This document shows positions 3,862 through 38,900 of a DNA stretch of 64,000 nucleotides, piece by piece. The notes beneath the pieces were generated by a model. It was not told where the DNA came from, did not search any database, and saw only the letters and a program-made list of their open reading frames with translations. The stretch spans positions 24,552,001 to 24,616,000 of the forward strand of contig NC_134470.1 of assembly GCF_964194025.1 (NCBI RefSeq), given 5' to 3'. The stretch's first letter is position 1. Every line of letters begins with the position of its first letter. The position numbers were made by a program, and so were the translations under genes. The DNA comes from Convolutriloba macropyga. Its lineage: Eukaryota.

Positions 3862-5052
3862 TTTATAGATGAGGTATGAAAAACAATTTTCAAAAATTTT
3901 TCTATAAACTGAAATTAAGAGCTGACAGAAGTACATTGGACGCGTACTGTTGTAGTTTTTATAATCGCTGGAAGAAATTGCTTTCCTTGAAAGTGCCTCT
4001 AATAATTTCTTTTACTTCATTAACAAAACCTAATTTTTTCTAAACAGTTAGTTAACACTGCTCTTGTCAAAAAAGTCTTCTTTGGTCATCTGAAAATTGT
4101 CCAAAAAATGAAAAAAAAACTCAAACACTAGTTTGTAGCTTATTTTCTCCCGACAATGTTGGAGACGAAAAATGGCTGTGATTATTATGCTCAATAGCTT
4201 TTGCATTCTAAACTACATATTTTCCTTCTTCCTGTCGCTACATTAAATATCAGCAGTGTTTACACCTTACGCAGCATGAAAACTTTGACCTAAAAGATCA
4301 TCTTCTCAGTGACTTATTATCATTATAGTTTTTACCAAGCTTAAAAAGTTTTCTACTCAATTCCACTAAAATGTAGAACATCACTTGGCTAAATTCGAAT
4401 TTTGTCGAGAAAATAGACTCTGTTGTCTAACTATTTATCACGACCTTGTTCTAAGATTAGTGTTATAATATAAGCGTTGGAAAAAATGGTTTCTGTAAGC
4501 AAATTTATCTCATAAATTATTCGAGTTTGGATATATCCGTCACACTTTTCACTATAAGAGTTTTTGGAGGGTTTTATGAGGTTATTTTGCTACTAATTTC
4601 AACGCCATTGTTAAATCAAAATCACGCTTTTCTTCCGCAGTTGCAACTATCAAATAGCTAGTGTCAATTTCACTAAATTGAGAGAAAACCTAGTTGGGGT
4701 TTAGTTTCGGATATATCACATTCGATTCTAATTGTGGATTAAGAAGACAATTAGCGGTTTTGCGTTTACGCCTATCACTCTCCACAAGAACAATCAGTAC
4801 TTTGAATTTTGTCTCCAGTGTTTACTAATAAGTTTTGATCAAAAAATGTTGGCAAATTTTATGTTCAAATTCGTGACATTGGGCAATTTTCATCCGTTAA
4901 TTAATAGTAAACTTAATTAAATGATTTTTGCGTAGCTTTCTTGCTATTATGCTCGCAATAATATATAAAAAAATACTAACCAATTTCTTTTTTTAAAAAA
5001 AATTATGTGAAGTGCCAAATGAAGCTATCAGATTTGTAATATAATTTATAAA

Positions 5053-5469
5053 AGACGAAATTGATAATTGTAGTAAAAGAATTTGAGATAGATTTCCTGA
5101 TCAGATATGTTATTCAACAGAAGCGGAAAAGAGTGACCAGAGGTCGCTTATAGTCTGCAACTGTCTGTTCCGATTTCACTTTGGTCCAGACATCAGCTTG
5201 TGTGATGACACACTGGAAATGAGTACAAGTGCTAAAATGTTTTGTTTTCCCCCTTAAACATTAACACAATAAAATCCTAAACAGTGCAGAATAAGCGGAG
5301 CCTTTTAACGTTTTGTTGTTTCTGCAGATCTTAATCTGGTATTTAACGTCCAAAATTACTGTGCTGGGCCAAATAATGGAGTAAAAAGACATCTGTTTGA
5401 CTCTAAGCGATGGATTTTTGTTTGATCAAAATTTTGTCGTGTTGGACTTTTGCTACACCTAAACTTCCA
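5053..5469 (+). repeat. ~400-bp direct repeat, copy 1 (copy 2 at 6421-6821)
   Basis: AGACGAAATTGATAATTG...CCTAAACTTCCA nearly identical in both copies; copy 1 has an extra ~15 bp (AAGACATCTGTTTGA). Confidence 0.95.
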
Positions 5470-6420
5470 GTCGAAAACAGATGGTTATCTCGCAAGATTC
5501 TGCCAGAATCTTGCAAAAACTGCCTATCTTGCAAGATCTGACAGAAAAATGGTTATCTTGCAAGGTCTGGCACAAAAATGGTTATCTTGCAAGATTCTTG
5601 CAAGTTCGTTCCGGTCGAGTTGTCCTCTTATTGGCTCTCATTCATGCAACACATTTCACTTCGACCAGAAATTTACTTAAGAATCAGTTGCGTGTTTTTT
5701 AAGAAAAAAATAAATTTTGAATAGATTTAAATCTGGAAATATTAATTATCTGAAGAAAACAAACTAAAATCTGCCTTTGAGAACTGTTAACACAAAATAA
5801 ATTACTATCAAAAATTATTTTCCTTCAACTTTATCAAGATTTACAAAACTACACGTCTATATTACCTTTTCTGATGAAAAAATTGTGTTATTATTCTTTG
5901 CATCTTAAACAGCTTTATTTCGTTTAATTTAGCTCCTTACGCTTAATTTTTCTTGCCAATGCCCAAAAAATTTGATGCTTAGATTAATACTTTTCTGATG
6001 TTTTTTTAATAATTGTCTTTCGATTTTTTGTCGATGCGCAAAATATGTGTGCATTCGAATATTGCAACCGTTTTAGCGTTTTCTTTCAAGTGTAAGGTCT
6101 TTTCAAGTGTAAGAAAGTTTTTTTTGCAAACGGCTATCTTGCAAGATTCTTGCAAAACGAACGGTTATCTTGTAAGATTCTGGCAGAACGAATGGTTATC
6201 TTGCAAGATTCTTGTAAAAAATGGTTATCTTGCAAGATCTTGCAAGATTCTGGCAGAAATTCTTGCAAGACGATGTATCGTCTTGTAAGATTCTGCCAGA
6301 TTCTGGCAAAATCTTGCAAGATAACCACTGGCAGAATCTTGCAAGACGATACATCGTCTTGCAAGATTCTGCCAGATTCTGGCAAAATCTTGCAAGATAA
6401 CCATTCAGATCCGGCTTGGG
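5467..6420. mobile_element. Non-autonomous DNA transposon (MITE) with ATCTTGCAAGAT subterminal palindrome arrays; EnSpm/CMC-like termini
   Basis: Left CCAGTCGAAAACAGATGGTTATCTCGCAAGA versus right TCTTGCAAGATAACCATTCAGATCCGGCTTGGG (imperfect TIR); many TCTTGCAAGA palindromes near both ends; AT-rich non-coding core. Confidence 0.75.
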
Positions 6421-6821
6421 AGACGAAATTGATAATTGTAGTAAAAGAATTTGAGATAGATTTCCTGATCAGATATGTTATTCAACAGAAGCGGAAAAGA
6501 CTGACCAGAGGTCGCTTGTAGTCTGCAACTGTCTGTTCCGATTTCACTTTGGTCCAGACATCAGCTTGTGTGATGACACACTGAAAATGAGTACAAGTGC
6601 AAAAAATGTTTTGTTTTCCCCCTTAAACATTAACACGATAAAATCCAAACAGTGCAGAATAAGCGGAGCCTTTTAACGTTTTGTTGTTTCTGCAGATCTT
6701 AATCTGGTATTTAACGTCCAAAATTACTGTGCTAGGCCAAATAATGGAGTAAACTCTAAGCGATGGATTTTTGTTTGATCAAAATTTTGTCGTGTTGGAC
6801 TTTTGCTACACCTAAACTTCC
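6421..6821 (+). repeat. ~400-bp direct repeat, copy 2
   Basis: Matches 5053-5469 and begins exactly at the MITE's GGG end. Confidence 0.95.
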
Positions 6822-7019
6822 ACACTCAATTTCAAATTGCCAAAAATTACTGCCTGAAGTTAGGTAGCGCTATTCTCAAACCTTGAGCCGAAGGAAATTA
6901 TTCTTTTAATTCCTTTTAGGCAAAAAAACTTTTCCAGCATTTCAGTTTTTTGGTTAATGTTTATAACGTTAAGTATAATCCTTCGATCGGAATAGACGTC
7001 CCGTTTGTGCAAATTTCAG

Positions 7020-7201
7020 TTCCTTTCCCACCGGTGAACATGAGCTTGATTGAAGAGGTCGCTGCCGACTCATTCAGCTTCGATCTCACACAAAACTTGT
7101 CAGGCTATACTCCCGGAGGATACGAAGTATACGTGCATGATCTTTCTGGAACTGAGCTAGACACGATTTATGACTTCTCAGGCGTTGAGGATGAATTTGG
7201 G
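7020..7201 (+). CDS. Probable next exon of the FN3-like gene (VPFPPVNMSLIEEVAADSFSF...YEVYVHD)
   Basis: TTTCAG acceptor (AG at 7018-19) is phase 1 and compatible with the 2519 donor (G|TT = Val); P.PP.N start typical of FN3; GTTAGT donor at 7202. Confidence 0.55.
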
Positions 7202-7263
7202 GTTAGTACTTTGCGCTGTATACAGAATAGTGTTATATTTAAGCTAGATTGTATGTGAATATG

Positions 7264-7463
7264 NNNNNNNNNNNNNNNNNNNNNNNNNNNNNNNNNNNNN
7301 NNNNNNNNNNNNNNNNNNNNNNNNNNNNNNNNNNNNNNNNNNNNNNNNNNNNNNNNNNNNNNNNNNNNNNNNNNNNNNNNNNNNNNNNNNNNNNNNNNNN
7401 NNNNNNNNNNNNNNNNNNNNNNNNNNNNNNNNNNNNNNNNNNNNNNNNNNNNNNNNNNNNNNN
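7264..7463. other. Assembly gap
   Basis: 200 N. Confidence 1.
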
Positions 7464-7579
7464 ATGAGGTCTTAAGGTTTGATGTTAGATGTCAACGAAA
7501 AGCTCTTCATTGTTGGTGTTGTGATTTCTTGAATAAACTGGTTTTATTTTTCAAAAACGCTAGAACATTTTCAGTGGCA

Positions 7580-7855
7580 ATGCATCAAAGTAAAATTTAT
7601 GTTGATGAATCTGGAGTTCAATGTAAAAGAGACAACACTTTGAGTTCTGTTCCAAGAGAGAATGTAGCTGAGGCTGATAATCGCATCCAACGAGAACTAG
7701 TTGAGCTAAGGAAAAAGGTTGAAGAGTTATCCGAGCGCGTGAGAAAACTAGAGAATGCTGCTGTCGAGTTGGTTGACTTAACGAAAGATGAGAGTTTTGA
7801 CACCACAGTTTCTGTAAATTCTGACGATATAAGTCCAGTAGAGAATGGCATATGA
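7580..7855 (+). CDS. Small coiled-coil ORF or exon of unknown function
   Basis: Heptad pattern IQRELVELRKKVEELSERVRKLE followed by VELVDLT (SUMO-interacting-motif-like) and an acidic tail. Confidence 0.45.
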   Translation: MHQSKIYVDESGVQCKRDNTLSSVPRENVAEADNRIQRELVELRKKVEELSERVRKLENAAVELVDLTKDESFDTTVSVNSDDISPVENGI

Positions 7856-8170
7856 AAACAGTTTCATAAATTCTAGTGGCTATCCTTAATAGATTACAAT
7901 TAGGTATTCTCGTCGCTAACAAAAGCAAAGTTTTGAAATGTAATTTACTATTTCGTACTGTCTCTGGAGATTTGTTTCCTTTCGAATTGTAGTTGTCTGT
8001 ATTACAAAAGTTGATTGATGCTCTTGACCAGTTACTCAATTTTATTGTCCAGTTACTCAAAATAAAATTGTTGGTTTATAATTTTTCACCCTGACACCCA
8101 ACAAGTTACTGTTATGAACTGTTTTTTGCTTTTTGAAATGCAGGATCTGCTATCTTTCAGACCACCACAA

Positions 8171-9823
8171 ATGTCTTCCAATAAATGCCATTATTCGTGG
8201 CTGATCTTGTCAGAAAGAGAAGATGACGCGCGAATAATTGACAAAGAATCCGAGTTGTGGGATAGCGAGATGAGTCTTATGGATAAATTGGCCCAGAAAT
8301 AGGGACAACATGTGAATTTCAATGTTAATGGCAAGCAGGTGCCCTATATTATAGTCCAACAAGGTATCGAAAATTTCGAAGAAGACCTTAAAACATTGAA
8401 AGAGGAAATGAAAATCTCAGATGAGATTGTTTGCGTTGAAGAAAGTAATCAGGCAGACGCAGCAATTGACTGTCCACAGTCAACTCAGAAGGCGACTAGC
8501 AATACCACAGTTGCAGTTGCGGTATTTATAGTTCTTTTCCTTACTGAATCTAAGTTCTCTCTCTAACCGCAACACAGCGCTATTATTTTTCAAAATATTT
8601 CTAGGAGTCCTTAGTCAATATTCTTTTGTGTCATTTAAAGCATATGCATTAAGATCCCCTTAATTTGTGATTGGTTATTGGAAATATTTTTGAATGTTAG
8701 TCGAATCACGATAATTCAAAGAGCAGTCAACCTTTATTTTTTAGTGTTGCTCGGAGCATGAGAATCTTACAGAAGTTCTTCTGAAGAACGAAAAACGACT
8801 CAATGACGTTGTAGACTTGATGACCTTGACGACGACTCAAGCGGCTAGCGATCTCTTGACTTTGAAAAGAAAAATAACTACCATTGTAAGCATTAGAAAC
8901 TTTTGTGATCTAGCAAATTGACTTTTGTGACTATCTAGCAAATTACAGTTCGTAATTTCTATGCTACAAGCGTCGAATCAACGTTGAGTCTGTAATGCTT
9001 CAAAATTGTGATGAGTTTTTTGGCTAAGTGCTTTCTCTAGGTGAACTACGCCTTTAATTCAGTCGACGTCAATTGTGGAATGGAGGTTGAAGAGGTTGAA
9101 TCAATAGAGGAAGTAAATGCTGACTCCGATGAAAGCAATTTGTTCCTTCTGATAGAAGAGAAACCTCCCGTACAGTTTGGGATAAACAATCAAAACTTGG
9201 ATAATGTTTATCATGGACATTTGCCGGCTTCCTTTGGTGTTGCCTTGCGCAAGTGGATATGGGGAGTGAATGGACTAGCATTCGAAATGATTTTGCCGCT
9301 GAAAAGTATCGATGGTGGTCGCACATGTGCTTCGAAGGAGTCAATGCTCAAGTTTTTCCGTAAGTTTTTTTCCCAGAATAGAATTTTTTCATCGTTTTAA
9401 TTGGGTTGTCTTGAAAGTCTAAAAACTCTCAAATAGGTAGTTGCAAATTACACATCCCATCAATCCTTAGTTTTTATGTTTTGCATTCCCTGAGTTTTAT
9501 CATATCAAGCATTTCTGCCATTAGCTTAGTCCTTGACTGGTAATTTTCGTCAAAGCTTTTCCACGTTTTCGCACAATTGATTATATCAAGACTCCAGTTC
9601 AAAGTTTAGAAAAAGTTTGAAATGATGTGTAGGCTCTGTTCAACGAAAGTTCCCTTGCAAAAAATTCCCCGATGCCAGGGCCAAGGCTAAGAATGCAGCA
9701 AACAAAGCAGGGCTAAACGCACGCCAAAGAATTCATGGAACAGGAAAATACACTACTTTTGCAAAGACAAGTAAGAAAGGAGTCCAAGAGTCAAATAGAG
9801 GAAATGAGAAAGATCAAATTTAG
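8171..9823 (+). pseudogene. Accessory gene A: 4 exons (8171-8521, 8745-8885, 9041-9359, 9633-9823), ~333 aa, C-terminal BEN-like domain; one in-frame TAG at 8300-8302
   Basis: All three introns are GT-AG and frame-compatible; C-terminus SFGVALRKWIWG...KFF|RSVQRKFP...AKAKNAANKAGLNAR fits the BEN helical pattern. Confidence 0.7.
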
Positions 9824-10193
9824 AAGTGCGGCAAGAATGAGAAAGATTCTTCTTGCTCCTCAATCTTTTGATTGATTTTTTTAGTTATGTTAGATGACTT
9901 TGGTGATTCGTACTATTTTATCGATGCAATTGATAGCTGTTTTGAGCTGATAGATGGTAGTTGATTTATTTCGATAGTTGATTTATCAGCTAGTGTTATT
10001 TCGTTTGCTATCTGAGTGAATAACTAACAGCGTTTTGGCTTTTGTGTTAAAAGGTTTTATCTCAATGCTTTTCAGTTTACGTTCCTAGATATTGAGGCAA
10101 TAGTAGGAAGAACTATCAAGGTAAACCAATAAATTCGATAGTTTGTTATCTGAGTTTTTGAAAACATTTTTTGTCCCGACTTCAGAGCTAAAA

Positions 10194-11658
10194 ATGTCTC
10201 AAAAACATTTGACTCTGTCATCTGGACGAGTTGTTAGAGAGCCTGGGTTTGAAACTGAGCCTGAAGTAGCTGTTGAACGAAGTCTTCAACGAGAACACAG
10301 AGATACCAAGTTTCTGTTCAACTATTCTGATACATTGTTTTCATGCTCTTTAAATTGTGATAGCTGGCCAATTAATACGTCAACGGACTCGAAGCTGTCA
10401 TTAAAACCCGGAGAGAGGTGCGACATGTTCCACAGAGACAAAAAGAACCCAAAGAACTGTCTGTTTCTGGGGAGGGGTTCCTCCAAATCTGTTGCGCATC
10501 ATCAGAAAGTCACGTTGGCCAGGTTAAAGAAAGGACTTCCAGCGCAGTATGTACCGCAACCCTCTTTTTACCAACAGTCTAGTCAAATCAGTCACGTCTC
10601 AAATTCAAAAACTGTTTTGTCAGCATCTAGTGGCTCAGTTGCTGTAAAAATTTCTAAAGATGCCAGCAAGGCCCAAAGTGAGGCGAGCAAAACGCTACTG
10701 TTCCAAGACCCTGCTGTTTTAAAAACGAGCGAGCAAAGTATCACATCGGTACCACCGGCTAACAAATCTAGTGCTGCAGATTGCAAAAGTTTCCAAGAGT
10801 TTATGAAAAGTCACGAGCAACGAATGAAGCATGCCAGAGATATTGCGATAGAAATTAAGAGAAAAGGAGATAAGAGAAGACGATATCAACACAGAGAAGC
10901 AGAAGACATGGTTAGTTTTTGTCAGAAATTTTTTTGTTTGGAATAATCGTGAAACTACTGATCAGCTTTTTGTTTGTTTATATTGCCGAAAACTGCTCCT
11001 TGATGCTCTGTTAAACGTTGTAGGCAATAATATAGATACGCCAGAGTTTGTTTAGCTCGTTGACTTGAAGGAAGCATTCAGTCTCCAACAAAAAGGCTTT
11101 CAAAGCGTTGATGAGGACCCCTCGTTAATGGAAGCCTACCCATGCAAACAAGTTGAATTCAATGGGGAAGATCTCTGCAAAACTCTTCGAGCCGGGCCAC
11201 ATCCGTCAACTCTTGGAAGATGTTTGAGAAAGTCTTTGTTTGGTGAGGATGGCCTGACAAAGGACATGATTGAAAGCGACAACTCGCCATGTCGGGGAGA
11301 AGCGGAAGCTGGGCTAGCCAAACTTTTCGAGGGTTACAAAGATTTTTCCTCCTGATAGCTTTTAAGTCGAAGGCCGCAAATCTTTCATTCTGATCTGTTA
11401 AAATATAATTTCTCATTAAATATAAATCAAAGTGGTTATATCTAGGTTTTTTGTAGTGAAAAAATTCCTTTCAAAAATGAATCGAGTTTGTTTACAGAAG
11501 TGGTCAAACAGAAGTATCCCTGTACTCCTCGACTTGCCTACAAAAAGGCCAGGATGGCAGCCAATCAGGCAGGCTTAGAAAGACGGGCTTTTCTCAACCG
11601 GAGTGACGATCCAAGCAAACCAAATTTGGAAGCTGGTATTCGAAGCCCTGAGCTTTAA
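10194..11658 (+). pseudogene. Accessory gene B: exons ~10194-10910, ~11024-11332, 11498-11658, C-terminal BEN-like domain; lesion near the first junction
   Basis: STLGRCLRKSLFGEDGL...KLFE|EVVKQKYP...AYKKARMAANQAGLERR; phase-1 intron 11333-11497; phase mismatch and a TAG (11053) at the exon 1/2 junction. Confidence 0.65.
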
Positions 11659-12276: not shown

Positions 12277-12957
12277 ATGAATATCTGTCAAATTTTGTGC
12301 CAAGTTGAAGACAGTGTTTCTAAGCGTTACATTCATGATACCAGTGTTGTTCCACATGCTCTAACCTCCTTGCTTTCGGACGAAGAATTAATACAGCACC
12401 AAAATAGTATTCGTGAATTTGGCAAGTTATACAACGATGTCGTTAAAATTTATACTGCATCTTTTGAAAGTGGTTTACGGACCGAGCCAGATAGCTTCGG
12501 TGGGTTTTGCCTTTTTAATCGTACTGGCCACACTATCAAATTGGGAGTTATTGAAAATACGGTTGGTCTGCTGGCAAAAGTGCCGAAGAACATTGAAATT
12601 GACGACTGGTCTATGATGGAAGGGGAGAAGCTAATGGTTGGCATTGCTAGGTGGGCTAATCACTCCTGCCGCCCGAACTGCGAATATTACATGAGTAGCG
12701 GGTACAATGGTCGGCCTTGTGTCAGGCTTCGTGCTCTGAAAGAAATTTTGAACGGCGATCAACTTCTCACTTTCTACGGTCCGGATTTTTTCGGCGATAG
12801 TAATGCTGACTGCCTCTGTGGGCACAATGATTTGCACGGAAAAATTGAGAGCACTCAAGAAACGTCATCAACAGACTTGACTCATAGTTCAGCAAAAAAA
12901 GCGAAGAAACGTAAAGCCTCGAATAAAAATTCAGAAAAACGTAAGTGTTTTGGATAG
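12277..12957 (+). CDS. SET-domain lysine methyltransferase, Suv4-20/KMT5B-C/Set9-like; probably the N-terminal part of the transposase ORF
   Basis: GIARWANHSCRPNC (NHSC at 12658-69), RALKEILNGDQLLTFYGPDFFGDSNADCLC, DWSMM and LCQVED resemble Suv4-20 [50 protein letters not shown] and LCENDD. Confidence 0.9.
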   Translation: MNICQILCQVEDSVSKRYIHDTSVVPHALTSLLSDEELIQHQNSIREFGKLYNDVVKIYTASFESGLRTEPDSFGGFCLFNRTGHTIKLGVIENTVGLLAKVPKNIEIDDWSMMEGEKLMVGIARWANHSCRPNCEYYMSSGYNGRPCVRLRALKEILNGDQLLTFYGPDFFGDSNADCLCGHNDLHGKIESTQETSSTDLTHSSAKKAKKRKASNKNSEKRKCFG

Positions 12958-15230
12958 TTTAATGAAATTTTATGACGAGTGCTCCAACACTAGTGTTTGC
13001 TCAGAAAGTTCAGAGTCAGCTGTTCTACAGAGTTTTGAGCCGCAATCATCTGATATTGAAGTCACTCATTTGCAAAATTTTGAAGATTCTTTCGAGATTT
13101 CTGATGAAAATACTGATGAAGACATTTTTGAAAGCAGTTTTGTTGAGAACCCTGTGTTCTTAAGCCACAGTAGCTCCTCTGGTTCACATCAAGAGACAGG
13201 TGATTTGGATTTTAGTAAAGAATATAGTGCCCAGCGTTTAAACCATGTGTCTGATGTTTCACCAGCTAATTTAGCGGCGTCGTTGATTGCTTTGATCACT
13301 AAATATAACGCTCCCGATTCTCTTCTGAAAGATTTGCTGAAAGGTGATCAAGCGCTATTTGGCGAAAGTGCGATATCTCCTTGGGCAGTACAAACGCAAT
13401 TGCAAAACTTTTCTAGCAATTATGTTTCACGTAAGCTAATTGTGCGTGAAGGCGAGATAATTCTCATAAAGTTTCGTTCTTTGTTGATGGAAATTGTTGT
13501 TAAATCAATTAACGAAATGTTATCTTACTCAAGAAGCAGAAGCAACACTGAGGATATTTTTATGCCTGAGCTAAAAGTAGTTGATGGAAAGGTGTCAATA
13601 CGGCTCATTTTAAATACCGACGGAGCGCTTGTTGCCAAGTCGCCTATATCTACTGCTTGGCCCCTGTTCATAGCTGTAGCTGATCTTCCTCCAAGAAAAA
13701 GACAGGCTTTCCAAAAATTAGTTCTGGGTTGTCTGTTTGTTGGTTCTGGCTATCCTGACTTCGATATCTTTTTTACCCACATTGAAGAAGAATTGTCAGT
13801 CCCGGAGTATTTTAATTTCGAAGGACAAAAGATATGTGTGATGTTCAAACCCATACTATTTATTGCCGACTTGATAGGAAAATCAAAAGTGCTCAAAATG
13901 AAAAGATGTAACGGCTTCTATGGGTGTACACAGAGAGGTGTTCACTATGCTGGTGTCCATAGATACTCACATAACAAAAAATTTGTCATGAGATCGTTTG
14001 AGTCGCATATGATTAACGTCCAGGAGTTGGAGAAGGGCGCCGATGACAAAATAAGATCCAAATTTGGGCGAAAAGCTGAGTGCGAAATTAGAACGCAAGT
14101 TCTAGAAAAAGCAAGAGTTCTAGGAAAAAGCAAAATTTTAGCCGTTATCCCAAATCAGCCTCTTTCTTCACCTATGGACCCAATGCATCAATTGTTTCTT
14201 GGGGTCGCAAAAGACTTATTTGGACATTTCTACGACAAAATGCCTTCCGTTCAGAAACGTGATTTGAATCACTTCTTGTCATCTATCAAGCTTCCCAGAG
14301 AACTGAAGAACTCTGTTAGATCCTTGGATTCGCTTAATACTTTCAAAGCCAAGGAGCTCAAGGTGTTTCTCTTTTACCTTTCACCAGTAATTTTTCCTCC
14401 ATTCTTGTTTGGCGAGGATAGAGGTAGTGACGAAAATGACCTCAAGAAGATAGTTTTTGCCACACGATTGTTGTTTGACACTTCGGAGCACGCAGACTTT
14501 TGTGACACTCTTTTGAACGATTTCTGCCGGAGCATGGCGGATAAAACGGAAAAAATGGACACAATCAATTTTCATATGCTGAGACACTTGAGTTGGCAAG
14601 TGAAAAATATCCGACCACTTTTCACTACTTCGGCAGCAATGTTCGAATCAACCAACAAATTATTGATTGCACCACTGACAGGAACAGTGAACCAATGCGA
14701 ATTGATGGTGTTGCGTTTCATACGAGCCAAATACGTAACAAAGATGAACGTTCAAGATGATTGCTTAACATCGACGATAAAAGATTTGGTCGAATTGACA
14801 AAGATTAATGAAGATTTATCATTTACTGAAAGCCAAGAAACTCGAGATTTTAGAGACCATCATCCTGAAGCTCAGCTCTTCTGTCGTTTTTTTTCAAAAT
14901 CATTACCTGACTTCCGTTGCCTACGGGCGCGGTTCAGACGCTGACAATTTTGTTGCTGCTGTTCTACATGATCAACTCTTCGTTGGAGAAATCCTCTTTT
15001 TTTTCAGAAATCCATCCACTGGATGTGTTCTACGGAAAATCGAAATATTGAAAAAACTAAAGCTAATGAAAACCGATTTCGCGGTAGAGGTCCCGTACGG
15101 ATTTATTGTTGGTGATGTGATCGAGACTATTGAAATTCCTGTGAGTGCTATTAAAACCAAACTTTTTAAATTTTTGTTTCAAGAAACTGTCTACTTGATT
15201 TCTTTGCTCAAGCATTATGAGCACAACTGA
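12950..15230 (+). CDS. EnSpm/CACTA-family DDE transposase, frameshifted at the T8 run 14887-14894 (ORFs 12950-14944 and 14808-15230)
   Basis: LNTDG (D 13619), WP...LPP..R, IADL (D 13868), NGFYGC, DPMHQLFLG, FKAKELK, NFHMLRHL, FES (E 14645), and C-terminal YLTSVAYGR...DNFV...VGEILFF. Confidence 0.9.
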
Positions 15231-15490
15231 GGTAGTTACTCTGCCGTTACCACCTTGAGTACTGATCAGATTTTTAGTTCATACGTTCTCTTATTGTTAA
15301 GTTCATAATGTTAAATCAAAAGCAGTTATGATCTTAGTTAGATTTGGAAAGATATTGTTAGATTTGATAAACAAATTTCAGGTCGTTTGCTTCATTATTA
15401 ATCTGTTTGTATTTTTCAACTAATTTTAAAAAGACTGTTCTAATCGTTTTCTATTGTTCAGTCAACCGTGACGTAAGATTTCATATTGCG

Positions 15491-15760
15491 NNNNNNNNNN
15501 NNNNNNNNNNNNNNNNNNNNNNNNNNNNNNNNNNNNNNNNNNNNNNNNNNNNNNNNNNNNNNNNNNNNNNNNNNNNNNNNNNNNNNNNNNNNNNNNNNNN
15601 NNNNNNNNNNNNNNNNNNNNNNNNNNNNNNNNNNNNNNNNNNNNNNNNNNNNNNNNNNNNNNNNNNNNNNNNNNNNNNNNNNNNNNNNNNNNNNNNNNNN
15701 NNNNNNNNNNNNNNNNNNNNNNNNNNNNNNNNNNNNNNNNNNNNNNNNNNNNNNNNNNNN
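15491..15760. other. Assembly gap
   Basis: 270 N. Confidence 1.
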
Positions 15761-16190
15761 TTCGGCTGAAAACAATTTTGCGTCTTTCTAGCAGGTGCTT
15801 TACTTGCTTCGGCTAAAATTCAATTTGCGTGTTCCTAGCAGGTGCTTTACCTGCTTCGGCGAGAAATAAGTTTGCGTGTTTTTTAGCAGGTGCTTTACCT
15901 GCTTCGGCGCAAAATAGTTCTCGGTGTATCTAGCAGGAGTTTTATCTGCTTCGACTAAAAATAATATTGCATGTTTATAGCAGGTGCTTTATCTGCTTCG
16001 GCTAAAAATAAGCTGGCGTGTTTTTTAGCAGGTGCTTCATCTGCTTCGTCAAAATATTTCGCGTGTTTTTAGCAGGTGCGTTAACTGCTTGGAGTTAAAA
16101 AATAAGTTTGCGTGTTTTTAGCGGGTGCTTTACCCGCTTCGGCTAAAATTTTTGCGTATTTCTAGCAGCTGCTTTAACTGCTTCGGCCAG
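15761..16190. repeat. Tandem array, ~45-bp unit containing the hairpin AGCAGGT-GCTTT-ACCTGCT
   Basis: About 9 copies of TAGCAGGTGCTTTACCTGCTTCGGC plus an AAAATAAGTTTGCGTGTTT-like linker. Confidence 0.9.
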
Positions 16191-17029
16191 AATTAAAATT
16201 AAATGTTCCAAATATAAAATTGCGTGTTTCTATTTATAGATCAATTGTCGATTTTTGAATTTGACTTGAGATTTTTCAGACACTACAGTTATTTTATCAC
16301 AATTTGCGCTCCTGTTTGTGTCTGTTGTGTGTTGCGTTTGGGTTGATCTTTGTGTCTTGTGGGTGTGTGTGTGCGTTTGTGTGTGTTTTGTTGCTAAGAT
16401 TTTTTTGGAGGTAGAGTTTGGGCCTTGTTTCTGTTGCTTTTTCTCTGTTCATTTCTCCTATAGTTGTTTGTTTGTTTGTTTGTCTAATTTTTGCTGTTTT
16501 TGTTGTTTAGATTTGTTTGGTGATTGAGTTTGAGCCTAGTATTTTTGCTCGTGCTCTGCTCATTTCTCCTATAGTTGTTCGTTTGTAACTCCGCCATAGC
16601 CGGTCCCCAGCCCGGATGAGAAAAGGAGGAGGGAAACACACTCATAATATACTGGAAAGATCTCAAATTTTGGTGTTTTGAAATCGACTTGAGATTATTC
16701 CGACAGTACATTGGCTCTTTTATGACTACTTCTCACAAAATGCCCTTTTTTCTGCGCTTGCTCGTTTTTCGTTCGTTCGCTTTCATGCTCGTTCGTTTTC
16801 GTTTTGCTCTCGCTCGCTTTTCGTTCGTTCGCTTTCACGCTTGTTCGGTTTGGTTACGCTCATTTTGCGGTCGCTCGCTTTTCGCTCGTTCGTTTTCACG
16901 CTCCTTCGCTCGTTTTGCGCTCGCTCATTTTTCGTCGTGGCGCTCGCCTTTTGTGCGAACCCCCACCTTATTTCTGTGCCCCCATTCTTGTGCTTTTAGA
17001 TGTACATTTATTTGTTTGCCTGTTTGTTT

Positions 17030-17240
17030 CTTCAGCGCAATAACCCCCCGCCCTTGTTTGTGACCCCTTCGCGCAGCACAATTACCCCCTGCCCTCTCTG
17101 TGCCCCCTTTGTTGTGCATTTAGATGTTCATTTATATGTTTGTCTGTTTCTTTCTTCAGCGCGATAACCCCCCGCCCTTGTTTGTGACCCCTTCGCTCAG
17201 CGCGATAACCCCCCGCCCTTGTTTGTGACCCCTTCGCGCA
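17030..17240. repeat. 40-bp minisatellite (CAGCGCGATAACCCCCCGCCCTTGTTTGTGACCCCTTCGC)
   Basis: Three clear copies plus one degenerate copy. Confidence 0.85.
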
Positions 17241-17404
17241 TTAGTCTTAGCTATTTAGGGTCTTTGTTTTTTCTTTGGCGGCTATAAAGTCAGGTGCGCT
17301 CCCTATGGAGCCGAGTAATGCACCGGCTCTAGTCTTCAAAGAAGCAAAAAGGCCCATGCAAAAGCTAAGACATGTTTACTGCTGCAAAAATCTGAACAGT
17401 TTCT

Positions 17405-18600
17405 TTGATCAGACTCAAGTGCGCTCGAAACGGCCTCTGATCAGACTCAAATGCGCTCGAAACGTCCTCTGATCAGACTCAAGTGCGCTCGAAACGGCCT
17501 CCGTTCTGCGCTCGCTCGCTTTTCGTTCGTTCGTTTTCACGCTCGTTCGTTTTCGTTTTGCTCTCGCTCGCTTTTCGTTCGTTCGCTTTCACGCTCGTCC
17601 GGTTTGGTTACGCTCATTTTGCGGTCGCTCGCTTTTCGCTCGTTCGTTTTCACGCTCATTTGTTTTTTTTCGCTCGTTTTGCGCTCGCTCGTTGATCAAA
17701 ATCAAGTGCTCTCGAATCGTCCTCTGATCAGACTCAAGTGCGCTCGAAAGGGCCTCTGATCAGACTCAAGTGCGCTCGAAACGGCCTCTGATCAGTCTCA
17801 TATGCGCTCGAAACGTCCTCTGATCAGACTCAAGTGCGCTCGAAACGGCCTCCGTTCTGCGCTCGCTCGCTTTTCGTTCGTTCGTTTTCACGCTCGTTCG
17901 TTTTCGTTTTGCTCTCGCTCGCTTTTCGCTCGTTCGTTTTCACGCTCATTTGTTTTTTTTCGCTCGTTTTGCGCTCGCTCGTTGATCAAAATCAAGTGCT
18001 CTCGAATCGTCCTCTGATCAGACTCAAGTGCGCTCGAAACGGCCTCTGATCAGACTCAAATGCGCTCGAAACGTCCTCTGATCAGACTCAAGTGCGCTCG
18101 AAACGGCCTCCGTTCTGCGCTCGCTCGCTTTTCGTTCGTTCGTTTTCACGCTCGTTCGTTTTCGTTTTGCTCTCGCTCGCTTTTCGCTCGTTCGTTTTCA
18201 CGCTCATTTGTTTTTTTTCGCTCGTTTTGCGCTCGCTCGTTGATCAAAATCAAGTGCTCTCGAATCGTCCTCTGATCAGACTCAAGTGCGCTCGAAAGGG
18301 CCTCTGATCAGACTCAAGTGCGCTCGAAACGGCCTCTGATCAGTCTCATATGCGCTCGAAACGTCCTCTGATCAGACTCAAGTGCGCTCGAAACGACCTC
18401 TGATCAGACTCAAGTGCGCTCGAAACGCCCCCTGATCAGACTCAAGTGCGCTCGAAATGGCCTCTGATCAGACTCAAGTGCGCTCGAAACGCCCCCTGAT
18501 CAGACTCAAGTGCGCTCGAAACGGCCTCTGATCAGACTCAAGTGCGCTCGAAACGACCTCTGATCAGACTCAAGTGCGCTCGAAACGTCCTCTGATCAGA
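17405..18600. repeat. 32-bp tandem repeat (TCTGATCAGACTCAAGTGCGCTCGAAACGGCC) interleaved with TTCG/CTCG-rich blocks in a 258-bp higher-order unit
   Basis: Identical ORF translations at 17802/18060 and near-identical ones at 17834/18092 (period 258); a related TTCG block lies at ~16755-16945. Confidence 0.95.
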
Positions 18601-19029
18601 CCGAACCCAGACCATGGTCCAGACTAAAGAGACTATAATCAGACCTTCCAGACCGAATTGACCCCTGATCAGACCGAACCCAGACCATGGTCCAGACTAA
18701 AGAGACTATGATCAGACCTTCCAGACCGAATTGACTTCTGATCAGACCGAACCCAGACCATGGTCCAGACTAAAGAGACTATGATCAGACCTTCCAGACC
18801 AAATTGACCTCTGATCAGACCGAACCCAGACCATGGTCCAGACTAAAGAGACTATGATCAGACCGTCCAGACCGAATTGACCTCTGATCAGACCGAAATC
18901 AGACCATGGTCCAGACTATTGTGCGCTCGAACCGCTTTCCAGACCCTGTAATTTCGGTCTGGGAACACAGGGGTGTGCGCTCGATTGGGTCTGATCATAG
19001 CTCAATTTGGGTCTGGACCAAAACCTGGG
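18590..19029. repeat. 73-bp tandem repeat sharing the TCTGATCAGA palindrome, ending in a candidate transposon terminus CCTGGG
   Basis: Period 73 (18601 versus 18674), about 4.5 copies; inverted copies of the motif near 18955-19020; abrupt end at GGG 19029. Confidence 0.85.
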
Positions 19030-27900: not shown

Positions 27901-30900
27901 TATTGTTTTTAGTAAAATTTATAAAATTGTAAAGGAAAATCACTTTTTTTAAAAAATTTGTTGAATAGATACCGTATAGTTGCTTCAAATTTTTTTCCGT
28001 TGAACTCAAAGATTTTTTTAACAGGAATCGACCTTCAATGCAAAACCATGCGAAAAAACCATTTGAAAAAACCATTCATGCGAAATATTAATTCGTTTTT
28101 TCTGACCTTCTATTATACGGATGGTATGAAAATCAATTCAAAATTAATATTTTTTAAACTAAAGCAATCGGAAGAGCATGATTCAATAATGCTAAAGAAC
28201 CCTGCAGGAGACTTGTCTTATTGTCAGAAGTTATAAAAAGTAAGAATCTTTTTCCTGTTTGCCTGAAGCGCAGAAAAAAAAACAATTTATTTAAATCAAC
28301 AAAAAAAGTTCGGGTAAAACAAAGATCTTGTTAGAGATGTAAATAAATCCCCCAACTACCGGGATGTGTTGAATGATTTGCCTCAAGGTAGGCATCTTTG
28401 ATCGATTGAGTAATGGCGATGAAATAATCAACGCAGACTCTGTCCGACTTCACGTGTAGGTCCCGTCAGAAACTGTGTGTGCGTGTGTAGCGACTGAGTT
28501 GTTTGCAGCCCTCTTCGTTCCGGCCAACACAAAGTCGCGGACTTTTTTTAGGATTGCACTCAAAAGTTAGCAAGTTTTTAGTGAATATTTTGATCAAGAC
28601 AAAATTATAGGCGTTCCCATAGATGTCCGATGGTGTAGCCGGGTTACTTGATTCCGGCGTGCTGGTGCCATTGCCCGTTGGGGTCTCTGCTTTTTGCGAT
28701 TGGGACGTTGTCTATTGGGATTTGTCATCGGAACGAACTCTTGATGATGTGCTGGCTTTTGGTTTTTTGCCATGTCGACAAGATTAACAAATTGCTGTGC
28801 AATTCTCTCATAGTTAGATTGAGGGCTTTTTGACTGAATTTTTGCTATCAAATTGCTGGAATGATTTGTTTCAGTGTTGTCAATCAATTTGTTCATTCCT
28901 TTGAGGAGTAAAATTTGGCGCCAAATTGCGAATCAATGTGAAAAATTGTCATGCCTTCTGTTCATCCCGCGCAATCAGCATTTACGCTTGGCGACTTGTC
29001 ATTTGTGCTTTTGCTGGTAATTCGCCTCAAATCGCGGAGCGATTGACTCGTATTTAGATTTACTTACAAGAAAACGATTTGCGCTGCGTTTCATTAAATA
29101 TATTTTTGCTCCCACGGATTGATCATCGTAATGAGTTATAATGGATTTGGCTGGCGGCGAAAGTAATCAACTAGTCCCATTTTCGTGCCCAGCAAGTGTT
29201 CTATTTCAAAATTAAATGGTAAAATTCGGTACACCAAGCGCGGTAAGCTGCTGTTACAAGATTAATTAGATTGATGTTTTTTCAAGATAGGGAGTAGTGC
29301 CCAATGATATGTAATGAGTGTAAATTTTTGTCCAAATAGGTAGTATTTGAACTAATCGATAGCATATACCACTCCCCAAAATTCGAGCTTCTTGATACTA
29401 TATCTGGATTCGACCAGATGTAAAAATTTCGAAGAGAGTGCCATTGTTTCCCGGCCTTTGTGTCTAATTGTTCGAGTGCTGCTTCGAAACCTTCTCTGGA
29501 TGCGTCGCATTTGACTCTTATTTCCAATCTCGGGTTGTGGTGTTTATTTTTAGTTGCTTGTGCTATTTGGTTTTTTACTTTTTCAAAAAGTATGTTCTGA
29601 TCGTTGGTCCATGTATATTTTTCAGTTATTATTTCCAATAACGGTCTTAATGGGCGGCATAATTTTGCTAGGTTTGGTATGAATCGAATGAAATGGTGTA
29701 CAGATCTGAGAAACGACCTTACTTTTTTCAGTGTATTTGGTGGTTTTAAATTAATGAAAGCGCTCATTTTTGTTTCTAGTGGTTTTAAACCATGTTTTGT
29801 AAAGTTTTAGATGAGCCATTTGATTTGATTATTTAGCAGAGTGGAATTTTGGAATTTTGATAGACTTATTCTCAGGTTCTCATCCTTTATTTTTTAAAAT
29901 CTTTTTATTACTAAAACTAAATCTTCATCCATTGTGTAGCTATTAACGTTCAAACTATCGTCTATAAAGCATTATGTATTCGTTGCAACAAATAATTTTG
30001 TATCCATGGCTTTTTGAAATTCAGCAGGCTTATTTGTCAGAGCATAAAAACCTGTTTTAAAATGATATGTGCCTGTTAGGTTGCCATTAAGTATTTTGAA
30101 GTTGAAATGGCGCGCGTTTTGGGGGTTACAAATTAAGCAGGCTATTGCAAATCGATTTTTGTGGAATACGAATCACTTCGCTCCGCGTTTGAGCTTATAT
30201 TTTGTGAAATCAGTTGTTTTAATCTGTCTATATTATCTGGTAATTATATTTGTGAATTAATTTATTCAATAATTTTGAAACTATTGTTAACTTTATTGAT
30301 CCAATTGACTAGAGTGTTTTTACTATAGCTGACATGAAATTTCTGCCCAAGCACTAGTCAAATTTTTTATCTGACTTGTTTTAGAAGTTTTTCAAATTCA
30401 GTTCTGATTCCTGCCTTCTTGGTGAAGTACTAAGTAGTTTCTTGTTTGTTTGATTTGACTGTCCGTTTTTTTACTTAGATTTCGCTTTATGATGCAGTGA
30501 ATACTTTTAGCGATTGAATCCTTGATTTGTTTCGGCTCGTTTATGCAGGTTACTATTTTGTTGATCGTCTATCGTTGTTTGATGCAAATTCCAAGCGTCT
30601 CGAACAAGTCTGTCCCAATGAGTAGTCGTATTCCGTTTTCGGCGATACAAAATTGGGTTTTTTTAGCTGACCACTTGTTGCATTCTCTTGGAGCCAGTAT
30701 GGTGCCTAGTGTCGTCACTGGTTTGAGAAGTGCTTGATATTTCTCTTCTTCTCTTTCAATCACTTTGCTTTCTCGGAGTTGTCTATGATAAGTTTTGTTA
30801 TATCCTTTGTTACGATGGAACACATAGCTCCGGGGTCTATTAGAAATGAAATTCAACTTTTTTTCTGACATTTGATCTCCCAAATCAAATTTATATGGGC

Positions 30901-35922: not shown

Positions 35923-38900
35923 TGTCAGTAGAGATTCAATTTTCAGCAATCTTGGCAGTGCACAACACTGTCATAGAAGCAATCAAGCTGAAAAGAAGTG
36001 ATTTATATTGGTTAAATGATCTTCGAGAAAAAACAACATTTATTTCGATTCGAATACTCTGAGTTAAATTATGGAACAACTTTGTTTCTCTATTGGGTTC
36101 ATTAACCAACAATATCAAAACTATGCTAGACTTCGTTAAAACCAGTTAGAGCAAATGATTATTTGCGTTGCTCAAAGCTTCTCCTACTTGGGAATTTTTT
36201 TCCTCAGAAGGAATGTTTTGAAAATATCAAAGTTATATCTCTTATCAACAAGACAAAGTTAATTTAAACTGGGCAATCACTAAGATCTACAGAAACAAGA
36301 TACGTTGACAAGCCGTTTATTGCTCAAGACACGTGCTTCACTATGCACTGTTTGTCAGTTTAATAAGACAATTTTAGCGAGTTTCAACTGATTTTTGTTA
36401 TTTTTCAAGCTCCTTTTATGCTGATAGTCACGTGGTTTTACATGTCAAAATTTCATCTCTGATTTGCTGTGGATAAAGATGTCGATCGAATGTAAACAAT
36501 TTTCAATTACCTCACTTTTTGGTGTAAATTTGATGTCATGGGAAGTTTGTTAACCATGTAGAAGTTTTGTCGAATGTCTGTATCAAAAACAGGTTGATTC
36601 AAAAACCAATCGCAAAGAATCTGATGCAATATTGTGAGGTCGTAGTATTGTTTCGCTGGGTGTTGAGTGCTGGGTGTTGATGTAGTTCCAATTTGAGTGC
36701 AACTTCATGTATTGTGATTGCACACTAAAAATAGCTACTGAATAGAAAAGTTGACGGACATGAACAAATCAATATTCAGTGCCTGATTCCTCCTTGAAGC
36801 GCTAATCAACTCGGTTGTTGATTCAGTAAGCTCAGCCACCACATCGCCGACCCTGTTTTCTATCGCAAAAACATCTCTACTTGCTAATATAGAGGTGAGT
36901 TTCACTAGTGGTCTCTTGTAAACTCTGTCGTTCGGTGGAACTATCGCCGATCGAAGCACACCGTCAGATCTATCGATGGTCTCAATAATTGGACCCACAT
37001 TTTATTATCCTTGATTATAGCTGTCTTCGGTCAACCAAACAAGACCGCCTTCGTTAAGGGTTTTGTTAGCCGTAGATCGCCATTTTTCCGGTAATTCCAC
37101 GTTGGCAGACACTCCTGACAAAATCTGTCCCAAATGAGATTTGCATAGGCTTGAGTTTGTTGAAAGAGTTTTCGATAATCAACAAATTTTTCTGCGCATG
37201 GTAGAAAAGGTAAGCAAACATTCTTATTGCCAAACAAAAACTGATTGGGGGTCAATGCCTCTAAATCATTAAAGTCTGAGCTGACTGGAGTCAACGATTT
37301 TGCGTTCCTTGTCTGTTCTACTATACACATCGTCGTTGAAAGAAAGTCGTTTTTAATTGATCTCTTCCCCAACATACATTGTTTTCTTGCAGCTTTGACC
37401 ATTCGTTCCCAAACTCCTCCAATGTGAGGTGCTGCTTTTGCTTTTTCTCTTTCTTCAACGCTGACTGCAAGTGTTGCTGGTTTGTATTTGGTCAATGCTC
37501 TCTGTAAGAATGCCACCGCATTCTTTAGTCTGTTAAGTTTACTGAATTTTTCCCCGCTGAATAACAGTTTTCTTTTCGTCAGCCTGTATAATGAAGGCTG
37601 ACAAGGGTATTTTCTCTTCATCTGATGCAAAGAGTAATTTCATTGGCTCTGGCCACTTGTTTTCTGGACGCTTCAACAAGACCGGACCAGTGAGCCACTC
37701 ACTTCTCTTGAGTTCGTCAATATTAATTAGTGTGGTGCCAATATCTGCTGGGTTACTGATACCTCTCACATGTTCCCACTGTGAAACATCAGTTGTGTCC
37801 AAAATTTCAGGTACTCGATTGGTCACAAACAATTGTTGTTTACTAAGGGAGCTCTGTATCCACTCCAAAACTGTCGTTCAGTCTGACTAGAGACTGCAAC
37901 TAGTTATCTTCATTCCATGGTCCTTGACTACCTTTTCTTTCAACCTCACTGCCATGACTGCCATCTGTAATTCCAGTCGTGGTATTGAAAGATGTCTCGT
38001 TGGGATCACTCTGCATTTTCCAATGACAATAGCTAAGTCAGCTGAGTATCCTTTTGGTTGTGAATTTAGATAGGCCGCTGCACACATGGTGTCTTCAGAT
38101 GCATCAGCAAACACTTGAAGTTCGGTTTTAACCCTCACTTTACTGAAGTAAATTTTTGCGATGCTTGTTTCAGCTACAATTGGAAGTTGTTTCTTCCACA
38201 GCTGTAATTCACCAGGCTCCACTTCATTGTCCCAATGTTGTTCACTCAACGTACAAACGCATTTCGGAAGTCGTCTCATGTGAACTCTGAAAAGACAGAA
38301 CAATCCGTTCGGCTCGAATACTGAGTGAGAGCAGTAGAGTGAGAGCAAAAGAGATTACTAGAAAATGAAGAACGAAAGCGTGAAAAGGTCACTCGAGAAT
38401 TCAAAATTTGTTCTAGAAAAAAACAAAAAATGGTCCAGCAAAAAATTTTCATAAAAGACCAACACTTACACTCAGTGCTACGAACTTCCTCGAGAGCAAT
38501 TAAAAACAGTAGGTCGTGTCCAAAATTACAATTCGAAGAATTATCAGACACTGAACGAAAGCCAGACCTCACTCAAATTGAGGAATGGGATACCATTGAC
38601 AGAATATTCCTCTGAGTTATATTTGCTTAGACCTCCTTGTTTGTACCTCTGCACACTTGAAGACTATCATCTGTTACAGTCCATTGTAGTCCAAGCACTT
38701 GAGGATCCCCCGTTATTAAGTTCCACTACGACAAGCTTCGTGTTGCTGATTGACTTCAGGCCTTCTCGAATTGTTTCGAATACTGCTTCGTTGTTGCTTA
38801 ATCATTTGTTCGATTCAAATTCAAGAAGAGAAGAGGTTCATGGACGCCATAGAAACCTCAAGCACTTCTCTGTTTGAGATTTTGCACATGTAGAAACATC

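Follow-up and report, generated by a model that had tools for sequence, protein, structure and literature searches.

The stretch of DNA considered here comprises 64,000 nucleotides (nt) of the animal Convolutriloba macropyga (assembly GCF_964194025.1, contig NC_134470.1, positions 24,552,001 to 24,616,000 of the forward strand) and is referred to, over its whole length, as the window. Between 7.5 and 15.2 kb it contains one damaged copy of a multi-gene cut-and-paste transposon of the CACTA-Mirage-Chapaev (CMC) group. The genes of this copy are, from left to right, a small upstream gene (ORF0), two accessory genes with introns (A and B), and a SET domain followed by a transposase (Table 1). The family is thus one of Mirage/CACTA-type animal transposons that combine a SET-transposase fusion with a conserved BEN-like gene pair.

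Gene A is modelled with four exons and gene B with three, amounting to 334 and 385 codons, stop included (~333 and 384 residues, respectively), and every donor and acceptor of the two models follows the GT..AG rule. Each of the two proteins comprises a conserved N-terminal region, a helical and acidic linker, and a C-terminal basic domain of ~100 residues, split by a phase-1 intron; in gene A, this domain starts at ~9155. At the domain junction of gene A, the exon closes on a lone C at 9359 with GTAAGT as the donor, and the acceptor TAG leads into the GC at 9633; the spliced frame reads ..KFF-R-SVQRKFP.. and stops at 9821-9823. At that of gene B, a lone G at 11332 ends the exon, the donor is GTTACA, and the acceptor CAG leads into the AA at 11498; the frame reads ..LFE-E-VVKQKYP.. 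and stops at 11656-11658. An earlier note on this DNA, made from the sequence alone, had proposed that GT-AG splicing at 9359/9633 and 11332/11498 yields two proteins that share a phase-1 intron at the same aligned position. The junction sequences are as it described, and the intron position is shared by all 11 copies compared, as detailed below.

The comparisons rest on 11 copies, i.e., the window and ten further ones (L001 to L010) obtained from several diverged lineages. All related loci except L010 were drawn from a single ENA assembly, in which DNA was fetched around nine family matches (L001-L009); L010 is an NCBI-sourced contig of a different assembly (GCA_013332895.1), fetched via a transposase relative. 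A word-indexed search with exon 1 of gene B returned six relatives at the level of open reading frames (ORFs). When the first half of the C-terminal domain was turned into a profile and compared with 1.84 billion representatives, 44 matches were obtained, two of which are spurious bacterial repeat proteins. The other matches, 42 clusters at 50% identity, comprise short ORF fragments of the A as well as the B type, and most of those reaching the end of the profile stop just past the exon boundary. Apart from the two bacterial proteins, these fragments are 57 to 211 residues long and none resembles a full-length protein. The family is missing from protein databases because the genes are split by introns and the host genomes appear without gene models, and recovery was confined to ORF fragments for that reason. 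Eight contigs were checked for family proteins, and all eight carry the genes of the element.

The phase-1 GT..AG intron that splits the domain occupies an identical aligned position in A and B in the 11 copies, with a sole splice-site exception, the mutated acceptor of gene B in L005. Its length differs widely between copies (273, 131-135, 181, 101, 123, and 61 nt in gene A; 165, 344-348, 198, 123, 141, and 59 nt in gene B). With lengths ranging from 59 to 348 nt, the intron is therefore old, and conservation resides in the exons. The splice sites of the remaining introns of A and B are likewise kept across copies, among them the acceptor TTTTAG and the donor GTAAGC of exon 2 of gene A. Exon 1 of gene A is conserved in eight other copies.

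The pair adjoins the SET-transposase in 10 of the 10 other copies, and the linkage, which the earlier note had named as a point to check, extends beyond the window. In L001-L009, the gene order is the same, with the exons of A, the exons of B, SET, and transposase in succession; the transposases are 46-67% identical to that of the window, except for L002 (98%). L010 is arranged differently. Over 4549-10940, it has a SET-transposase 36% identical to that of the window, followed by an A-like and then a B-like gene, the pair being downstream and not upstream; its domain introns measure just 59-61 nt.

The spliced C-termini of A and B align over 113 residues with 34% identity (BLASTP E value 1e-9). 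Their Smith-Waterman score is 98, far above the scores of 2000 shuffles (28.5 ± 4.6, maximum 50), and the similarity is therefore not due to chance. The N-terminal regions are conserved within the A family and within the B family, and a weak profile-profile similarity exists between the two (hhalign P 0.007, 40 columns). Alignable C-termini and dissimilar N-termini had both been noted earlier: the former hold, whereas the N-termini may be not wholly unrelated, given this weak match. In a maximum-likelihood tree, the two paralogues of L010 fall within the A clade and the B clade, with support values of 94 and 93. The duplication is therefore older than the split of these lineages, in keeping with the ancient duplication suggested from the window. 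A and B are almost certainly ancient paralogues encoded by the element, and they originate from a tandem duplication predating the diversification of the family.

Between the lineage of the window and that of L001/L003/L006, the ratio of nonsynonymous to synonymous substitution rates (dN/dS) is 0.035-0.04 for the A domain, at saturated synonymous sites, and 0.21-0.29 for the B domain, at saturated or high dS. Judged by these ratios, the two domains are under purifying selection between lineages. Among the young copies L001/L003/L005/L006 (dS 0.06-0.11), dN/dS reaches 0.4-0.74. This pattern is commonly seen when genes are needed for a transposon to spread and degenerate once it has inserted. 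Copies with transposases of ~65% identity share 82-87% of the residues in the first half of the A domain.

The SET domain is fused to the transposase in one ORF in L002, L004, and L006: L004 possesses a single SET-transposase ORF of 868 residues, that of L006 is at least 970 residues long and runs off the contig, and L002 is open across the junction up to the contig limit. In the window, the fusion is frameshifted near 12890 and near 14890. In addition, exon 1 of gene A contains an in-frame TAG, at which the 98% identical L002 displays AAG in an unbroken frame; four public runs (X1-X4) also read A and not T at position 8300 (codon AAG). With the relatives open, the TAG and the two frameshifts indicate that the window copy is damaged or carries assembly errors. 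Within the transposase family, 15 of 16 members match Transposase_21 (best E value 3e-4) and 11 of 16 match DUF1258 (best 2.2e-15), the transposase ORF of the window itself remaining below the Pfam threshold (E value 0.051). DUF1258 represents the Mirage group, close to CACTA transposases (PMC3985635). From these family matches, the transposase is assigned to the Mirage/CACTA type, as a DDE transposase of the Transposase_21/DUF1258 kind found in the CMC group. As for CMC elements, multiple dispersed copies exist: ten were fetched in addition to that of the window, and the transposase clusters hold up to 107 member sequences. The SET part may be an active methyltransferase, judging from its retained motifs. 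To note, in L009 a segment of the transposase (residues ~141-555) is present in three tandem copies at 14098-17902.

The C-terminal domain of A and B was modelled with AlphaFold, using one spliced sequence as the first row of the alignment together with 44 first-half pieces. Depth was thus limited to the first half, since joint alignment of exon pieces from both halves misplaced those of the last exon. Model B (predicted local distance difference test score, pLDDT, 78.5) contains two short strands plus five helices, of which the final one is long (residues 80-104); model A (pLDDT 66) also displays two short strands and five helices with a long final helix. BEN domains are mainly helical; they combine two short strands with five (or six) helices, the C-terminal one being long, and those of type I bind DNA via helix 5 (PMC8887127). 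When model B was compared with the AlphaFold DB clusters, the top four matches had probabilities of 0.85-1.0 and template modelling (TM) scores of 0.52-0.53, and two of them, at probabilities of 0.85-0.98, are named BEN domain-containing protein; 25 of the 26 further rows have probabilities of 0.38 or below. Foldseek against the PDB returned nothing significant for model B (E >1), the BEN4 domain of BEND3 and the BEN domain of NAC1 being at the top in TM score and probability, and nothing at all for model A. In a scan of 48,161 PDB chains made without Foldseek, the BEN domains of BEND6 and NACC1 rank 1 (Z 4.3) and 2 (Z 4.0) with model A, followed by BEND3 BD1 (rank 5), BANP (rank 6), and Bsg25A (rank 9); with model B, BEND6 ranks 5 and NACC1 ranks 22. 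No significant match was obtained with Foldseek against Swiss-Prot models and viral models, and an ESM Atlas feature search with the first half of the domain and exon 1 of gene B was uninformative. In its second half, the domain is strongly basic (isoelectric point, pI, of 10.1-10.7) and harbors an invariant A..N..G core surrounded by conserved K/R residues. The modelled topology and the basic second half fit type I BEN domains. Despite the low scores, weight is given to BEN because the fold named beforehand in the earlier note tops an unbiased scan, and recurs for the paralogue in another library. On these models, the C-terminal domain of A and B probably adopts a divergent BEN-type fold.

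Among known proteins, the BEN proteins (Insensitive, Elba/Bsg25A, BEND3/5/6, BANP, NACC1; PF10523) come closest to this domain as modelled. They share with it a length of ~100 residues, the predicted arrangement of strands and helices, and a predicted long basic last helix, and in Insv and BEND5/6 the domain is likewise C-terminal, after a coiled-coil or a linker. In contrast to them, the A/B domain could not be linked by sequence to Pfam BEN or to any solved BEN chain, a transposon carries it in two conserved paralogues, and its DNA binding is putative.

By combining these features, a working scheme can be proposed. The element encodes a SET-domain/transposase fusion and the two accessory genes, the products of which would recognize and bind specific DNA sequences of the element. 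A heterodimer of A and B is conceivable because both genes are always kept. The two proteins would bind to repeated sites at the promoter or close to the ends of the element, and would bring in the SET-transposase or control its activity. CACTA and PIF/Harbinger elements (Myb-like ORF2 in the latter) are known to possess a second, DNA-binding protein, and we infer a functional analogy of A and B with TnpA of En/Spm or with the Myb-like second protein of PIF/Harbinger. A TnpA-like DNA-binding role is tentatively put forward and stands somewhat short of an even chance. TnpA of maize En/Spm, a CACTA element, is likewise an accessory non-catalytic protein, and the transposase of that element belongs to the same superfamily (Transposase_21/DUF1258). 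A and B are likened to TnpA by role alone, no relation in sequence or fold being claimed. The present element, like En/Spm, also has long repeat arrays beside its genes, which are candidates for membership in the element. Conversely, it comprises two (or three) separate genes instead of products alternatively spliced from one transcript, its host is an animal, and CACTA termini and binding motifs have not been identified in it.

A number of observations weigh against such a scheme and are best considered together. At the sequence level, a Pfam search (hmmscan, E values up to 10) with both spliced domains did not retrieve BEN (PF10523), nor did a search with single exons. PDB sequences, searched up to the same E value by phmmer and hmmsearch with the single domain, the first-half profile (n=45), and the second-half profile, gave 0 matches. 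At the structural level, all scores are weak (Z 3.2-4.3, TM of 0.53 or below, Foldseek PDB E >1), and Z values below 8 are, according to the caveat of the scan tool, common among unrelated helical proteins. Models A and B stem from the same first-half alignment; they are therefore independent only in part, and how the last helix packs is uncertain. The BEN-like label of the earlier note thus stands as far as the fold is concerned, with BEN domains ranked first in the PDB scan for model A and among the top four AlphaFold DB clusters for model B, at low scores, and fails in sequence comparisons with Pfam and the PDB. At the level of the element, no convincing pair of inverted repeats was found around the genes in the window, L007, L008, and L009, and no target-site duplications were found, so that binding sites cannot be pointed to. 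A core motif common to the flanking arrays of different lineages was looked for and not borne out. Finally, the four public runs X1-X4, which behave as genomic DNA, retain the introns over the region and contain no joints.

These negative results nourish a different view of the shared domain, according to which it would be a new small helical domain that resembles BEN by convergence and acts via protein contacts rather than by reading DNA, its partners being the transposase, the SET domain, ORF0, or host chromatin factors. The missing Pfam and PDB sequence signal would be explained, as would structural Z scores of at most 4.3 and Foldseek PDB E values above 1; moreover, some BEN domains themselves, those of 'type 0', do not bind DNA (PMC8887127). 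However, BEN, the fold proposed beforehand, heads the prior-free scan with A and comes up again in AlphaFold DB with B; in addition, the second half is strongly basic (pI 10-11), its A..N..G core being invariant and flanked by conserved K/R residues. This view of the domain, and with it the suggested list of partners, is considered unlikely. Another question is whether A, B, the SET-transposase (and ORF0) might be alternative products of one long transcript, as are TnpA and TnpD in En/Spm. All reading frames indeed share one strand and follow each other closely, head to tail; yet every unit is bounded by an ATG and a stop codon of its own, both conserved, and the location of the pair downstream of the transposase in L010 is easier to accommodate with independent units. 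A single transcript is therefore the less probable arrangement, slightly more doubtful even than a new domain, and it would touch expression only, being compatible with a DNA-binding pair.

The two genes could also be host BEN-type genes captured as passengers, without a role in the life cycle of the element. Capture of host genes occurs in this transposon group, and accessory genes for SET and other chromatin proteins are documented in Plavaka, Harbinger, and Helitron elements. However, both paralogues are kept in every sampled lineage, including that of the other assembly, in which transposase identity falls to 36%, and they are under strong purifying selection between lineages. In addition, none of the matches among 1.84 billion representatives resembles a full-length protein, and the eight contigs checked all carry the element's genes. 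Capture without function is very improbable. An element-borne pair of BEN-type proteins with a TnpA-like role, taken as a whole, is moderately favored over the course of this comparison, this grade being a compromise between layers of different strength.

Chromatin-type accessory genes have been documented in HarbingerS (SET), Helitrons, red-algal Plavaka/EnSpm (PAG1-3, methylase and SET), and fungal KDZ/Plavaka (TET/JBP). HarbingerS, red-algal Plavaka/EnSpm, KDZ/Plavaka, and PIF/Harbinger resemble the present element in being cut-and-paste elements with a SET domain and extra conserved genes. They differ from it in that the transposase itself bears the SET domain here, accompanied by two BEN-like accessory genes. 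In the literature searched, no paper ties BEN domains to EnSpm, CACTA, Mirage, or Harbinger elements. Accessory DNA-binding proteins set where and when multi-gene transposons move, and they are hardly known beyond plants (TnpA) and PIF/Harbinger. The BEN-like pair and the SET-transposase fusion, conserved across deeply diverged lineages, provide a concrete, testable example in animals, and a possible source of lineage-specific BEN-domain factors in animal genomes. A bolder proposal, which we regard as rather unlikely, is that of an undescribed animal Mirage/CACTA clade equipped with a chromatin toolkit: a transposase fused to a probably active SET lysine methyltransferase, a BEN heterodimer targeting the element's own repeats, and a small coiled-coil protein with a motif resembling those for SUMO interaction would together mark or protect chromatin, or direct integration. 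If this proposal were true, some animal BEN-domain transcription factors would descend from such transposon genes.

Table 1. Features of the transposon copy and of its surroundings (window coordinates unless a related locus is named).
Feature	Position	Strand	Remarks
ORF0	7580..7855	+	91 residues from first ATG; small conserved gene ~250-400 nt upstream of gene A
ORF0 copies	L002 7335-7658; L007 8583-8864; L008 7038-7367; L009 8958-9131; L006 19-174		
Gene A exon 1	8171..8521	+	Conserved N-terminal region; donor GTATTT at 8522, conserved
In-frame TAG in gene A exon 1, window copy	8300..8302	+	ORFs 8114-8302 and 8312-8566 share frame
Gene A exon 2	8745..8885	+	Predicted linker (helical or coiled-coil); both flanking introns in phase 0; tblastn matches in copies
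Gene A exon 3	9041..9359	+	Acidic linker and first half of BEN-like domain; 1 nt of split codon at end
Gene A exon 4	9633..9823	+	Second half of BEN-like domain (basic helix), basic tail, stop; exon pI 10.7
Gene B exon 1	10194..10910	+	Conserved N-terminal ~115 residues, variable middle, basic helical end; donor GTTAGT
Gene B exon 2	11056..11332	+	Linker and first half of BEN-like domain (from ~11125); 1 nt of split codon at end
Gene B exon 3	11498..11658	+	Second half of BEN-like domain and stop
SET domain part	12277..12957	+	Pfam SET, E value 4.4e-10; NHSCxPN and ..LxTFY motifs retained
Transposase (Mirage/CACTA-type)	12950..15230	+	Split by the frameshift near 14890 into ORFs 12950-14944 and 14808-15230
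Tandem arrays, 32-bp and 73-bp units	17406..18918	.	Downstream of transposase; candidate subterminal repeats
Long tandem arrays	1-2091, 15761-16187, 17406-18918		Units 86/32-bp, 47-bp, 32-bp, 73-bp
Microsatellite pseudo-ORFs	L001 9732-12221; L003 10176-12296; L004, L005 ~9.6-13.5 kb		

ORF0 was located by tblastn upstream of gene A in L002, L006, L007, L008, and L009, with 43-99% identity, and was not detected in L010. Its product consists of a coiled-coil stretch followed by a conserved ..VDLT.D.S.D.TVSV.. segment (VDLT and acidic/serine residues), and ends at a conserved ..NGI stop; Pfam provides weak coiled-coil matches alone. The VDLT and acidic/serine segment resembles what we take to be a putative SUMO-interaction motif.

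On the left side, the window is cut by a run of N at 7264-7463, exactly where the match between L002 and the window ends. Most related contigs stop just upstream of gene A, five of them at ~250-600 nt, which suggests the presence of a repeat that breaks assemblies. A palindromic motif, TCTTGCAAGA, forms a dense cluster at 5480-6405, with 11 copies on both strands in units of 29-76 base pairs (bp); this cluster is absent from all fetched related loci, the majority of them being truncated shortly before gene A. On the right side, the 32/73-bp arrays of the window recur in the same orientation in L001 and L003, 4-5 kb downstream of the transposase, and in L002, upstream of gene A. L001, L003, L004, and L005 contain a long 12-bp microsatellite downstream of the transposase and before the arrays. 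An '829-aa ORF' past the transposase in L001 and L003 was considered as a gene and discarded, as it consists of this microsatellite (..CMYVCMYV..).

The rest of the window holds remains of BEL/Pao and Gypsy-type retrotransposons, which point to a repeat-rich part of the genome and to an animal host. Remains of long terminal repeat (LTR) retrotransposons are found at 29282-29767, 37887-38348, and 50362-52910, and include RNase H, a Pao/BEL peptidase A17, an integrase zinc domain, and a reverse transcriptase.

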